A stretch of 64,000 bases of DNA from Bigelowiella natans CCMP2755 (taxonomy: Eukaryota; Protista; Cercozoa), in contig ADNK01001316.1 in assembly GCA_000320545.1 (NCBI GenBank), forward strand, positions 22,663 to 86,662, read 5' to 3'. Made by a program: the position numbers and the translations under genes. Positions 1,741 to 59,578 of this stretch are shown here, piece by piece. Each line of letters opens with the position of its first letter. The stretch's first letter is position 1. Below the pieces are notes generated by a model. The model did not search any database and was not told the DNA's origin. It worked only from the letters and a program-made list of their open reading frames with translations.

Positions 1741-1788
1741 AGCGGATGTCATGTATGTGTTGAATCTGTTCAAAATTGTCATCGATCC
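1741..1788 (-). repeat. Dispersed ~50-bp bipartite element, copy 1
   Basis: Reverse complement GGATCGATGACAATTTTGAACAGATTCAACACATACATGACATCCGCT; the first 15 nt are identical to the copy at 53006. Confidence 0.75.
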
Positions 1789-2227
1789 CAATGATGTAAT
1801 AGCACTTGCAAAACTGCGCGGCTCCAGCGCTCAAGTTAGCCACTATATGGCTAAAGCACAACAATAGACATACGTATATATCATATATATTATATATACT
1901 GTGTCTATAGTCACATGCCCATGCTAGCATGCAGCGTTTACTTCTTACAAATCTTAATGTAGTGACACACATCTAGACATGGCTGTCAATGGCTAGATGG
2001 CGTACCGCGGCTGTTAGCTAGCTAGCATTACACTAGCGATACAAGCTAGCGCATGCGTGGCACATATCTAGTGCGTTCTATAAATATTTAATTAAGGCGT
2101 AGCATGGCAGTAGGAGGGGCTACAATCAATAGTATGAATTGAAAATATGTAGCACGACTGCATCGTACGTGCGTACCGTACAGCGCATCTAAATCAACAG
2201 TGATACTTGCCATTATATAAATTCATT

Positions 2228-5200
2228 CTAAATTCTGAAGGTCCCTATCTCAGGGTCTGAAGATGCTATGTCTCGATCATTCAGCGCGTAATCATACCTG
2301 GGAATAACATAACCAAATTTACAGGAATAGACATAAATGCAAGTAAGCGTAGCTGCTCGCACGGCACAGATTTAATATGATCCCACCCGGTTTCGTGCAG
2401 CGTATCAACTGGAAGGCACCATAATAGACGGGACTGGAGTGTTTACGATGTCCGTTAATTACATGAATCGTGGTCAGGAAGTGCATAATTATGAACAATG
2501 AAAAGACGAGATTGGTTGCGGATTAGTAACATGAAGAGCAAAACATGCCTTGCCAAAGACCGCTTCCCAGTTTTTCCGATAGCCTTGCGAGTACTGTAAA
2601 TTGTTCGGTTAGGAGCGAGCAACAGAGGGAATCTTCATTGTCTCTCAATCGCAATGCGTCGATTTCATATGGGATCGTCACAATCTTCTTTCGCAGCATC
2701 AACATCATATCGCCGTGATCTGTGTCATCTTCTTTTTGTTGTTTTCGTCGTTGTTTCATCGGATGATACCGGAGATCTCATCCCATGCATCTCAGCCAAT
2801 TCGATGGTAGTCTTTGCCATGAGAACCAGCACCAGATGGAACCCGAGGAAGAATATCAAAGTCACGCCTGGCAGTTGTATCGTGATCCGAGGGGTTATCA
2901 GTGTTTCTGCCGGTTAATCGTGGGTAGATGGTGGCTAGGAAATCTATCCGCAAGAGAACTAAGGATGTGACTGTTTAAAAAAAAAAGAGAGAGAATCTTG
3001 AGCAGTTACCGAAGGACAGCGTTATCACGCATACAATAGCCTCAAGTCCGCTCAATCGCCGCTGCATCCCTGCCAGAGCTATGGAAAAAGGGAATGGGGA
3101 TATAGACCAAATGCACAAATCTATTTAAGAATTGGGGATCGATGAACCTTGAGAACCCCTAGATGCAATGGATAACCCATTATTTAGAGGACAACTGTTT
3201 TTTTTTTTTTTTTCACCATTCTGCTTCCGTTCTCTCCCGGCAGCAAAAGCATAGGGTAGGGCCCATCATTTGTTCGTTGATGCAGTACCTGAACGCCTCA
3301 CAGACGTACCAAGCAGCCCATAGATGATCGGAAAGATCCGGGTAGCATATATCCCAATCGTCTGCGATTGTTGCGGTTCAGTTCCATTATCATCACCATC
3401 ACTATCACTATCACTATCACCATCATCATCATCGTCGTCATTATAAAAGTTGTCATCGTCGTCGTGAGAATCGGTGGCTGCTGTTACCATAACTGCGTAG
3501 AAGATAAAGAGAAGAAAATATTTGTAGTTTCTCAATCCCACGCAGTTTCCAAGCCAAGGGCCTAATATGTATATATATATATATATATATATATATATAT
3601 ATATTATGTTACATAAAATACAAATGCGTGAGTGTACATAACTGCCAATCAACCATCATCCTGTAGCAATCAAGCATCAACGTCGTCATCACAATCACAC
3701 CGTGATAACATCTTCGTATCGCCATCGTCGTAACAACTCATCATGAGTGAAGGCTACTCTGTAGCAATCATTCTATATACTACTGATGGCCTACAATGGT
3801 GATCCATCTTGAGAACACACTCCCCGCAGACGGAGCAATGGTGTGCCCTACGGGGCTTTACCTGACCAGTAGGCAACAGAAGAATGTGTCGGCGTTCATC
3901 ATTCTCTAACTGTGCTTTACATGGCGTGTGCCTATCACCTGGTGGCATCTTCTACATCGGGGAAATTGTTCGTAGAAAGCTGCATCCTCGTGTATGGTAT
4001 TGTTGCTGATGCTGATGCTGCTGCTGCTGTTGCTTCGGGGATCTGATAGGAGGAGTTGATGATGATGACAACAACGATGATGATGATGATGATGATGATG
4101 ATGATGGTGATAATAATAATGCATGAATGTAGACGATTTCTAAGACGACCGAAAGGATATACCACATCTTCTATAATGTCCTTTTTAAAAAATTGGAAGT
4201 TCCTTTTTTGGAACACCAAATTCTTGTTCCATGTTAAATTTCAGCCTACTTCGTATTCTGCCCGACTCCTCATTGCCATTTCCATGGGGTGAACGTCCCT
4301 TCGTCGTATCTATGAGCTACTCGCCGCGTACAAACCATAACAAAACGTGGACGAATCAAAATATGGAGAAGCAATGCAGTTACTTGCTGCATGGTGTGTC
4401 AGCAGTGTGTCGCATAGATGCAATATCAGCCAGCAAGCAAATGATCACCTGCATCCTCGTTGCAATATCTATATCTGGAATGGGGTTTCGCCGGACTGAT
4501 CGATAGGATGATGAAAACAACAAGTGAGTTTGAGCTGCTTCATCTGCTGATGAGAGAAAATGGTAGCAGTAAGCTGCAAATCGATATTGCTGCTGCTGGA
4601 TAGGATGATAACCTGCAGACGATGTGATCACACACCGAATATAGCTAACAAGAAGTAGCGACAAGGATGCATGAAAAAGGGCCACGAGTAACCTAAATAT
4701 GTATTTGATCAAACATACCACATCACCATTATCATCATCATCATTATCATCATCATCATCATCATCATCATCATCATCATTATCATCACCACCACCACCG
4801 CCACCACCACCACCACCACCAACACCACCAACACCACCAATCACCACTTCACTACCAGTCTGAAATACTGTACAGAGCACGTGCTGGATCATGAATGCCC
4901 ACCACAGTGAACGTGAAAAAATGCCTTATTCAGGGGACGATCATATTATAAGCAAGAAACAGTTTTTATTGCGATGATATACAATCGAACAAATGAACAA
5001 GAACGCATATGAACCTTCGAAATTGCTCGTCAAGTGGATAAAATGTTTCCACCGTCAGGATGTTTGACAGGAAAGCACAGACAATTAATCACCATGACCA
5101 AGCAAGTTTTATGTTTACCAATCAAACATTATGAGCGAGAGGACTAAAACAACGGGAAGGCCCAAGATGAGTCTTTTGATCAGACAGACTGCCTTGATGA

Positions 5201-5246
5201 AGCGCGAACGCATCGAGACTGGTCTGAAAGCCATCCGGTCTGCCAT
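2228..5246 (-). CDS. DHHC-type protein S-palmitoyltransferase (multi-exon)
   Basis: Spliced [29 protein letters not shown]|[23 protein letters not shown] (intron splits DHHC at ~3796/3563), TM1 [32 protein letters not shown] (TTxE motif), [15 protein letters not shown]|SRLLWCLP. Stop TAG 2228-2230. Start ATG uncertain (5246 or up to ~5426). Confidence 0.9.
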
Positions 5247-57634: not shown

Positions 57635-58254
57635 AGCAGTAGCAATCCCACTCAGTAATTCCGCATAGTCTAAGCGATGGCAACCTCCTCCATGTTCTGC
57701 TGAATTTGGTAGGCTATATTCAGTGCATTGTCGTTTAATTGGCAATACAGATATTCTAGCCTGGGCAGGATGGAATATTAGCTGTAGGATATCCGTAAAC
57801 TATATAACGAAGTAGGTTTACAAGATAATTTGGTTGTGGAGACTGTTTAATCAGAAACGGGTGGTGTAGTTAAGATTAGATTTCACCTTTCTCATGCAAG
57901 AGCTTAAGAACTTCAGTAATTACACGTGTTCTAATTACATGCTTGGCCTAAGAGTAGAAAAAAAAACACCGTGTTTTGTTGGTTCGCAATTTGCTCGCAT
58001 GCAGCCCATATTAGAACTTTGGATTCATGCATCGGCACGACGAGTTTTCTCTCATGTAATGGAGCACCATCACGTCTACCTGTTTGTGTTTAACTGTGTT
58101 CAGCTTGACGTTACACACACATCTAGACATGATTAACGCGCACACTGCCGCATTGTTTTTTGTAAGCTTGACCGCCATGCAACTCCTACGCATGCACAGC
58201 TAGCTAGCTAGAGTCCAACAATCATGCAGCACGCATGCAACAACCACAACTGTA

Positions 58255-58783
58255 TCAATCCCGGTAATAACGAGCTAGCGAGTGGGTTTTGAACAAACTG
58301 TGCTTTGCGCGTGCGGCCTGGCGCGCTCAATCGTTGCATTTGGACATTGGAAGCACACTGGAGCCTGTTTGAGGTTCACACAAGTCCGTCAAACCTGCAA
58401 CGAATCGCCAGAATGTGCATTTGGAAGCTTTTGCACGCGACCAAGCGCGTCATGTGATGCAACAGACATTGGATTTGCTCGCATTTCTTTGAAATTTTTC
58501 GTGCACATCACATTTGGTCAAACGCACACGCAAAAGCATTCAAAATGTGGCAGAGAACAAACGCGCAGCGTGCATCCGCTACACAACGGGTGTGAATTTT
58601 CACAGCTTGAGGCCTTGAAAATGGACATTTTGTGGAATTTTGGTCAACATTTCGGTCATTTTTTCAGGTTTGGCCATCGGACAAGTTCTGATGACTTTTC
58701 TTTGACTAACTGCAACTGCCTGCTGCTTCAAAGCGCGTCGCAAAGCGCTGCACTGTTTGCAACCCCGTCGTTACCGGGTTTGA
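58255..58783. mobile_element. Possible decayed MITE-like relic
   Basis: Imperfect inverted repeats TCAATCCCGGTAATAACG (58255-58272) and CGTCGTTACCGGGTTTGA (58766-58783), 15/18 match, with weaker similarity continuing inward and A/T-tract-rich interior. No TSD or transposase seen. Confidence 0.35.
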
Positions 58784-59578
58784 CGGATTTGTGTCAAATT
58801 TGATTTTTTTTTCGAATTTCAGCTTGCATGAAAACCTCATTTTTCAACGCCTGCCAGGGGGCGAAAATTGAAAAATTCTTACCACTTTTGAACACGCTAG
58901 CGCATTTGCATTTGCGAGCCACAAGCTAGCAAGTTTTGCAAGCTCATGAGGGTGTGTGCACACTAGTTTCATGGACGTGCGAAGTTTCAGCACACGCACG
59001 CAAAAAGCATGCACCTCGGCGCACATGAACGCGCAAATGTGCACTCAATGACTCTCAATTGAAAATTCATGCCATTCGTTACACATTTGATGCAGTTGTG
59101 ACAAAGCTAGAAAGGGCAGAATTTTCTGATTTTTGCAAAGCGCGCCATGCAGCGCATGCATGCATTGCATGTACGTGATGAAGCGCATGCAACGTAACAA
59201 CTCTGGAGCTTTCGAGAGCCAACATATTATTAGATTTATTTCTACAGCGTTTGCCGCCGCGCTGGATGTGACACACTGTCTAGCTGTGTCTATAGTTGTG
59301 GGCGTTGCTACGTAGCGTGCGTGGACACGTGTCATCAGGTACGGTGTGCTATGCTACATGCACGCACACATGCTAGATATGGCTGCTAGCTGTGGCACTT
59401 ATCAACACACAGACATCGATCAGGCAATTTGACAGTCTATGGTGCATGTGGTGAACATGCAATCTAGCAATAATGGCTAGTGCATGTGATATTGATGTAA
59501 CAAGATGGCATGACACACATGCACCTACAATGCTAGAATGTGCTGAGACGTGCCGACTCCCACATAGCTTGATCAATG

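Follow-up and report, generated by a model that had tools for sequence, protein, structure and literature searches.

A dispersed bipartite DNA motif in Bigelowiella natans is the 3' end of a high-copy LINE

Motif copies and neighboring genes in the window

The window, a 64,000-nucleotide stretch of a Bigelowiella natans CCMP2755 contig, carries six clear copies of a ~50-bp bipartite motif in both orientations, as originally described. An nhmmer search with a profile of 56 genomic tails recovered exactly those six (E = 3.6e-23 to 2.5e-5), and each foot of the motif occurs far above chance (4 matches apiece vs. 0.04 and 0.23 expected). Two additional copies, described as degenerate, were indistinguishable from chance: 33733 (minus strand) gave no match, and 59053 (plus strand) scored 1.7 bits, below the best match on the reversed window (6.3 bits). 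The copies and the two genes that could be oriented next to them are as follows (ORF2 is the second open reading frame of the LINE described below).

1736-1834, minus strand: decayed tail copy of the GGATCGATGAC subfamily, 3' end eroded (nhmmer E = 2.5e-5 for 1743-1833)
3269-3655, minus strand: DHHC exon (Pfam-supported); the 3' end of its gene faces copy 1736-1834
8305-8315, plus strand: upstream target-site duplication (TSD) of copy 8308-8378, 11 bp (10/11 match)
8308-8378, plus strand: best-preserved tail copy, 71 bp (nhmmer E = 3.6e-23; 94-97% identical to long LINE copies at their 3' ends)
8308-8353, plus strand: ORF2-derived part of this copy, last ~15 codons (frame from the intact copy L067)
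8354-8356, plus strand: former stop codon TAA of this copy (stop from L067)
8357-8378, plus strand: 22-nt 3' UTR of this copy, ending in ...CCGTCTCA
8379-8389, plus strand: downstream TSD of this copy
8743-8753 and 8813-8823: TSD pair of copy 8752-8812, 11 bp (10/11 match)
8752-8812, plus strand: tail copy, 61 bp, 5' truncated (nhmmer E = 1.7e-15)
20338-20464, minus strand: older tail copy, ~127 bp, comprising the last ~33 codons of ORF2 and the 3' UTR (nhmmer, tblastn, and blastn)
26081-26148, plus strand: decayed tail copy (nhmmer E = 1e-5)
26885-27313, minus strand: weak P2X C-terminal match; the 3' end of this gene faces copy 26081-26148
52981-53053, plus strand: tail copy of a diverged subfamily (GGATCGATGAC variant), ~45-73 bp (nhmmer E = 8.8e-9; blastn)

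The upstream TSD at 8305-8315 overlaps the first bases of copy 8308-8378 because the junction is ambiguous. The older copy on the minus strand was matched by nhmmer over 20338-20419 (E = 1.3e-13), by tblastn with a LINE ORF2 (P0001, amino acids 1126 to 1158) over 20364-20464, and by blastn; no TSD was recognized around it. TSDs are not recognizable at four of the six window copies, as expected for old copies. Only tails are present: tblastn with ORF2 found no LINE body in the window, and in the remaining alternating pyrimidine/purine (Y/R) tracts of the window, the tail profile picked up no additional decayed copies at an E value of <1. The copies at 8308 and 8752 lie only 374 bp apart.

To orient neighboring genes, 28 stop-free segments close to the copies were scanned against Pfam, which was informative for two or three genes only. 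The motif may lie only on the 3' side of genes, as originally claimed: the copies are in or beside alternating Y/R tracts, and Pfam-supported exons point to a gene 3' end facing two of the six.

Anatomy of the motif

The motif is the extreme 3' end of a high-copy B. natans LINE and consists of the last codons of ORF2, the stop codon, and a 22-nt trailer. The left foot corresponds to the last seven codons of ORF2 (…RMTIEKI), the stop codon is located in ATT-TAA inside the motif, the variable middle is the beginning of the 3' UTR immediately after the stop codon, and the right foot is formed by the final 17 of the UTR's 22 nt. The reported pattern of conserved ends and a variable middle is true for 77 genomic copies, with the dip in conservation falling on the 6 to 7 nt following the stop codon. 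The near-constant spacing between ATTGA and CCGTCT was likewise confirmed (29 nt in 60 of the 77 copies; range, 28 to 34). The variable middle separates transposon subfamilies and is not a spacer within one site.

Genome-wide copy number and insertion hallmarks

Approximately 2,000 tails are present in the 91-Mb genome. Exact bipartite matches number 313, vs. 0 for the reversed control; at ≤2 mismatches, there are ~2,130 matches to the right foot and ~1,790 to the left foot, vs. 8 and 13 in controls. All copies share a sharp 3' end (…CCGTCTCA), while on the 5' side similarity breaks off at lengths ranging from 41 bp to >3.5 kb or full length (median, ~100 bp), forming a continuum of truncation lengths with no preferred 5' end. 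What precedes the tail is in every case LINE ORF2 sequence. Many tails, including two in the window, are flanked by TSDs of 7 to 16 bp; perfect pairs of 15 bp (L002, L005, and L011) and 12 bp (L006 and L026) occur elsewhere in the genome. LTRs and terminal inverted repeats (TIRs) are absent. Tails also cluster, with two or three within 200 bp at three loci (L013, L036, and L040).

The LINE family

The full-length element is ~5 kb long, with ORF1 (~489 amino acids, without a Pfam domain), an overlapping ORF2 (~1158 to 1179 amino acids), a 22-nt 3' UTR, and no poly(A). ORF2 encodes an APE endonuclease, a reverse transcriptase, and a C-terminal Cys/His motif (C-x2-C-x8-H-x3-C). In long copies, an open frame of 1167 amino acids with PF14529 and PF00078 ends in …SYIRMTIETI*, with a stop codon that lies within the motif and 22 nt short of the element's end. 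The PF00078 (RVT_1) match has E values of 1e-8 (L067) and 2.4e-16 (L074); PF14529 is N-terminal to it (E = 7.5e-13 and 1.1e-17), and PF03372 matches weakly. Frames of 1173 to 1198 amino acids run without interruption in at least 10 copies in the genome. The family is probably still active. A metagenome pattern scan found the same arrangement of ORF1 (489 codons), ORF2 (1160 codons), and tail in an environmental contig (L074).

The ORF2 cluster includes a Bigelowiella_natans protein from EukProt. Sequence matches in the PDB are weak (R2 reverse transcriptase and TRAS1 endonuclease); searches of the ESM Atlas and PDB gave generic endonuclease-reverse transcriptase matches only, and a word search gave two distant unnamed relatives only. 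No description of this LINE family was found in the searchable literature, and the family is apparently undescribed so far. A preprint goes only as far as noting an enrichment of endonuclease-reverse transcriptase Pfam domains among TpA-depleted coding sequences.

Insertion-site preference

Strongly preferred targets are alternating Y/R DNA, e.g., (TA)n, (CA)n, and CATG-type palindromes. The 3' flank has ≥9 of 11 alternating Y/R steps in 65% of 75 copies, vs. 5.7% of random window positions, and (TA) of ≥4 units lies directly 3' of the copy in 14%, vs. 0.36% at random positions. The window copies fall within the top ~8% of most Y/R-alternating DNA. The element is not strictly site specific, many insertions having hit irregular Y/R strings and carrying ordinary, unique TSDs. 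Insertion preference for alternating Y/R DNA would explain why the copies lie in tracts that appear palindrome rich.

Constraint on the tail

Between lineages A and C (~62% amino acid identity), the last 80 nt are identical at 74 of 80 positions (~93%), compared with 50 to 70% identity further upstream. Within the last 19 codons, the identical codon is used at 17 of 18 identical residues, vs. 40 of 77 upstream (Fisher P = 9e-4), and the conserved stretch reaches ~30 nt beyond the motif into the coding sequence. Conservation of the lineage B tail was read from coincident coordinates only. The original prediction that the motif was not decaying neutrally is borne out in that conservation is nonuniform, including at synonymous sites in the last ~80 nt, but not in its attribution to a host DNA site. 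The retention of this segment and its synonymous sites across diverged lineages suggests that the tail is probably a cis-acting RNA module recognized by the element's own reverse transcriptase. Protein recognition would then concern the RNA of source copies rather than DNA at the window sites, which fits these data. Recombination or template switching, rather than selection, could also account for tail identity between lineages.

A hairpin (GGAUG/CAUCC plus UGAA/UUCA) is predicted in several copies, with z scores of -0.5 to -1.0 relative to shuffled sequences, and no covarying hairpin pair was found among 12 subfamily representatives. As the cause of the conserved ends and variable middle, an RNA hairpin was set aside, since the tails fold no better than shuffles and lack compensatory changes; it is a possibility only. 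Linked A-to-G changes in several copies (TTAGG to TTGGG, TTACATCC to TTGCATCC, and TTTAAA to TTTGAA) were rejected as covariation: every one of them falls on a TpA, in agreement with the TpA-to-TpG/CpA hypermutation already published, and they are therefore not structural evidence.

Origin of the motif

The motif very probably forms the 3' terminus of a non-LTR retrotransposon that is autonomous and has an APE-type endonuclease; the copies in the window are dead insertions that lack most of the element's 5' part, rather than protein-binding sites of the host. The element would spread by target-primed reverse transcription, its endonuclease nicking alternating Y/R DNA. Reverse transcription may begin at a fixed RNA 3' end (…CCGUCUCA) and mostly abort early, which would leave tails of ~40 to 500 bp between TSDs of 7 to 16 bp. 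The feet are probably kept nearly constant across lineages because the reverse transcriptase must recognize the terminal ~80 nt, behavior typical of stringent-type LINEs. Longer shared flanks and TSDs, which the original prediction had named as signs of a plain transposon relic, are both present, as ORF2 colinearity upstream, graded 5' truncations, and TSDs. A transposon terminus had been among the candidates originally listed and came closest, although the element is an autonomous LINE with APE endonuclease and reverse transcriptase rather than a Crypton, MITE, or other nonautonomous DNA element.

A broader scenario, which we consider unlikely, is a "safe-haven" strategy within the gene-dense genome of the alga, in which the endonuclease would seek Z-DNA-prone Y/R tracts, mainly at gene 3' junctions, tail insertions and TpA-to-TpG/CpA hypermutation would help to build those tracts, and the ~80-nt RNA recognized by the reverse transcriptase would overlap the last 19 codons of ORF2. 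If true, such overlap of coding sequence and cis element at the end of ORF2 would be unusual for a LINE.

Less likely still is that some LINE tails have been exapted in gene 3'-end or termination zones, or that the junction tracts are largely successive tail insertions modified by TpA hypermutation. Tails do pile up, both at the three clustered loci and at 8308 and 8752 in the window, and their flanks are Y/R alternating, a property that TA-to-TG/CA transitions preserve; however, the window's Y/R tracts yielded no additional decayed copies to the tail profile (E of <1).

A bipartite host cis element selected at each locus (an ORC/ARS-type origin, an insulator, or a stop for cohesin or condensin at the 3' ends of genes), the reading that was originally preferred, is very improbable. 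Its appeal lies in the conserved feet and variable middle and in the placement of copies in particular intergenic tracts, two of them facing a gene's 3' end. Yet target-site preference accounts for the location, and the variable middle reflects a difference between subfamilies. The motif is continuous with the LINE reading frame and includes its stop codon, conservation continues ~30 nt upstream into coding sequence, and the ~2,000 copies have TSDs and graded 5' truncation, none of which suits a two-footed DNA-binding site.

It is equally hard to credit that the motif is the terminus of a nonautonomous element resembling a LINE end (SINE, MITE, Helitron, or Crypton). The brevity of most copies (median, ~100 bp) speaks for it and a SINE partner could in principle share the tail, but lengths form a continuum without a preferred 5' end and always with ORF2 upstream, there are no TIRs, and the TSDs range in length from 7 to 16 bp, unlike those of DNA transposons. 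Helitrons and Cryptons do not produce TSDs such as those of the tail copies, and a SINE is opposed by the lack of a defined unit length and of a tRNA-like or polymerase III head among the copies examined. All four were discarded on the grounds of TSD type, absent TIRs, and ORF2 colinearity.

The main value of this analysis is one of correction: a candidate origin or insulator motif is an ordinary transposon relic of a LINE family and, as transposon debris, calls for masking and not for follow-up as a regulatory element. The analysis also defines an apparently undescribed B. natans LINE family (~2,000 tails, with ORF2 intact in at least 10 copies) with a clear alternating-Y/R insertion bias and a tail module conserved across lineages, which offers a convenient multicopy substrate for studying the published TpA hypermutation of B. 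natans.

Comparison with known LINEs

In stringent-type LINEs, such as UnaL2 of eel and ZfL2-1 and ZfL2-2 of zebrafish, the reverse transcriptase recognizes a specific 3' tail (PMC1636434, PMC4176376). Like these, the B. natans LINE lacks poly(A), carries a conserved 3' tail that is unique and ends at a fixed point, and keeps that tail across diverged lineages while the remainder diverges; a small hairpin is also predicted in its tail, without statistical or covariation support. Unlike UnaL2 and ZfL2, it has a UTR of just 22 nt, and the conserved module therefore extends ~57 nt into the ORF2 coding sequence; in addition, no SINE partner was found and no terminal short-repeat array was seen.

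Several APE-type LINEs target microsatellites, namely, Waldo (ACAY), Mino (AC), Kibi (TC), Koshi (TTC), and Dong (TAA) (PMC3812793). The B. natans LINE is likewise of the APE type and markedly favors simple alternating repeats at its insertion point, and its endonuclease has a weak PDB sequence match to TRAS1, an R1-clade element. Unlike the microsatellite-targeting LINEs, it has a preference only, with ~14% of copies abutting (TA) of ≥4 units. A (TA)n or Y/R preference is absent from the listed LINE targets, Micron MITEs being the elements named for TA repeats (PMC3812793).

The very short 3' UTR, the lack of poly(A), and the extreme 5' truncation that leaves many short tails are shared with RTE-clade LINEs. 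RTE elements are ~3.2 kb long, have in essence one ORF, and lack a C-terminal Cys/His motif, whereas the B. natans LINE is ~5 kb long and has both an ORF1 of 489 codons and, close to the C terminus of ORF2, a C-x2-C-x8-H-x3-C motif.

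Copies of the element in the window and in the genome

On reading the eight sites of the original prediction, six recognisable copies were found, and a tail profile built from the final 82 nt of 56 copies from the genome outside the window retrieved exactly the same six (E ≤ 2.5e-5). The observation is real for these six. The two copies described as degenerate did not hold up: 33733 gave no match to the tail profile, and 59053 scored 1.7 bits, under the 6.3 bits of the top match on the reversed window. Each motif half matched the window four times, compared with 0.04 and 0.23 matches expected from dinucleotide shuffles.

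Tail copies in the window (coordinates, strand, profile E value)
8308-8378, +, tail copy, 3.6e-23
8752-8812, +, tail copy, 1.7e-15
20338-20419, -, tail copy, 1.3e-13
52981-53053, +, tail copy, 8.8e-9
26081-26148, +, tail copy, 1e-5
1743-1833, -, tail copy, 2.5e-5

In the window's own assembly (91.4 Mb), the strict bipartite pattern has 313 exact matches (reversed control, 0). With ≤2 mismatches, the right foot occurs ∼2,130 times versus 8 in the control and the left foot ∼1,790 times versus 13. Conserved ends with a variable middle were borne out in 77 genomic copies, the dip being the 6 to 7 nt after ATTTAA, as was the narrow ATTGA-to-CCGTCT spacing, which is 29 nt in 60 of the 77 (range, 28 to 34). 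The middle segment occurs as discrete variants (AAACATTTC, AATTCTTC, AATCACTTC, AATTTGTTC, and others), which correspond to subfamilies within a repeat family and not to a binding-site spacer.

Other genes in the window (coordinates, strand, feature)
6005-6472, -, calmodulin-like gene, single exon, four EF-hands (Pfam E about 1e-41)
38480-40366, -, multi-C2H2 zinc-finger ORF, 628 aa
56383-57156, +, G-protein alpha subunit N-terminal exon (PF00503, E=1e-65)

The element is the 3′ tail of a LINE

Thirty loci, picked by tail pattern alone, were aligned. Every copy ends at a common terminal base, …CCGTCTCA, with unique sequence beyond, while similarity extends upstream for 41, 44, 52, 63, 72, 93, 110, 139, 237, 278, 340, or >1,200 bp. 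The median copy length is ∼100 bp, and among the longer copies colinearity reaches at least 3.5 kb. One locus outside the window (L067, reverse strand) carries an unbroken 1,167-codon frame with PF14529 (endonuclease-reverse transcriptase) and PF00078 (RVT_1), ending …S-Y-I-R-M-T-I-E-T-I-stop, and its stop codon falls within the motif, 22 nt from the element end. The parts of the motif therefore map onto the end of ORF2 and the 3′ untranslated region (UTR): the left foot is the final seven codons of ORF2, ATT-TAA or ATT-TGA its final codon and stop, the variable middle the opening bases of the 3′ UTR, and the right foot the final 17 nt of the UTR. The bipartite element is thus the truncated 3′ tail of a LINE family, an ordinary kind of feature, and its interpretation as a host protein-binding site is not supported. 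Only tails, and no LINE body, were found in the window; the longest (20338-20464) still translates into the final ∼33 ORF2 residues.

At least 10 genomic copies have open frames of 1,173 to 1,198 aa, spanning at least three lineages (88%, 67 to 70%, and 61% identity to the ORF2 reference protein P0001). L074 (positions 1-5162 of a 5,162-nt stretch; environmental contig MDTE01204107.1) appears to be an intact full-length copy, with a 489-codon ORF1 (a coiled-coil-like stretch and no Pfam domain), a 1,160-codon ORF2 overlapping it by ∼35 nt, and the tail, including a 22-nt UTR. Several metagenome contigs of 5.0 to 5.2 kb carry the same ORF2, suggesting a unit length near 5 kb. The C-terminal region of ORF2 contains a C-x2-C-x8-H-x3-C motif. 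At 90%, the ORF2 protein falls in one cluster with a EukProt B. natans protein, which supports that alga as the source. The family is probably active. It is apparently undescribed: a literature search found no description of it, and a 2026 preprint goes no further than to note an excess of endonuclease-RT Pfam domains in TpA-depleted coding sequences (bioRxiv 10.64898/2026.01.13.699255).

Insertion signatures and site preference

Many genomic copies are directly flanked by target-site duplications (TSDs) of variable length, with perfect pairs of 15 bp (L002, L005, and L011) and 12 bp (L006 and L026) and the remainder ranging from 7 to 16 bp. The same check was positive for two window copies (8308-8378 and 8752-8812; 11 bp each, one mismatch) and negative for the four older ones, which have no recognisable TSD. 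In non-LTR elements, retrotransposition by target-primed reverse transcription is defined by a constant 3′ terminus together with 5′ truncation to graded extents, TSDs that vary in length, and an ORF with APE and RT; the copies of this element probably arose by this route.

The family has an insertion preference for alternating pyrimidine/purine (Y/R) tracts. The immediate 3′ flank reads Y-A-T-A-T-R…, and at least 9 of 11 steps alternate in 65% of 75 copies versus 5.7% of random window positions; an adjoining (TA) run of at least four units is present in 14% of copies versus 0.36% of random positions. From several TSDs it is evident that the element inserted into a (TA)n or Y/R string that the target already contained. 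Five of the six window copies have at least one flank over the 93rd percentile of Y/R alternation, and the window holds ∼23 such strongly alternating tracts. These are CATG/TGCA/CACA/TATA-rich, occur once every few kilobases, and might stem from (TA)n together with TpA hypermutation.

Examples of Y/R-alternating tracts in the window
1251-2200
20001-20600
33301-33800
43301-44100
58901-59600

This target choice explains the placement in "palindrome-rich" tracts. Gene 3′ ends point toward two copies, the only ones checkable.

Genes whose 3′ end points to a copy (coordinates, strand, feature)
3269-3655, -, DHHC palmitoyltransferase exon
26885-27313, -, weak P2X C-terminal match

Fresh tails also lie beside old ones in the genome (L013, L036, and L040) and in the window (8308-8812, the pair starting at 8308 and 8752), with two or three independent 5′-truncated tails within 50 to 200 bp, often with (TA)n between them. 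This pile-up suggests that certain insertion hotspots have been used more than once.

TpA hypermutation

The final 480 nt of 20 long copies were surveyed for TpA. In some, 8 of 9 or 9 of 9 consensus TpA sites are now TG or CA, with 4 to 7% of other positions changed; other long copies retain 7 or 8 of the 9. Among those surveyed were L039, L044, L047, L048, and L049, some of which lost 6 to 9 sites. This loss fits the regional TpA hypermutation described for B. natans (bioRxiv 10.64898/2026.01.13.699255), which also accounts for the foot variants TTGCATCC/TCACATCC and TTGGGATG/TCAGGATG and the change of TAA to TGA.

Conservation of the tail

Between the consensus sequences of lineage A and the AATTCTTC lineage (lineage C), whose ORF2 proteins are ∼62% identical, the final 80 nt match at 74 of 80 positions, whereas the preceding 280 nt are only 50 to 70% identical, and the boundary is sharp. 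Of the 18 residues shared over the final 19 codons, 17 have the same codon in both lineages, compared with 40 of 77 shared residues upstream (Fisher p = 9e-4). Together, these identities argue for nucleotide-level constraint on the terminal ∼80 nt in source elements. Judged by coincident coordinates, the left foot is exact at the ORF end in the 67 to 70% lineage (genomic copies C1129, C515, and C1193) and in C128 (67%), and both feet are exact in C994 (64%). A second block, ∼360 to 400 nt before the LINE 3′ terminus, is identical at 35 of 40 nt between the lineage A and C consensus sequences and encodes …TSWMRAICGVGN…; this may be due to constraint on the protein only or may mark a further cis element.

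The likeness of the tails could also have arisen by exchange of tails between lineages. The best-supported reading is that the terminal ∼80 nt would act as a cis-acting 3′ RNA module to which the element's own RT has to bind. A weak hairpin is predicted in the tail (z = −0.5 to −1.0), and no covariation was found in it. In stringent-type LINEs, the RT must bind the 3′ RNA tail (PMC4176376, PMC1636434), and we propose that the B. natans LINE may do likewise.
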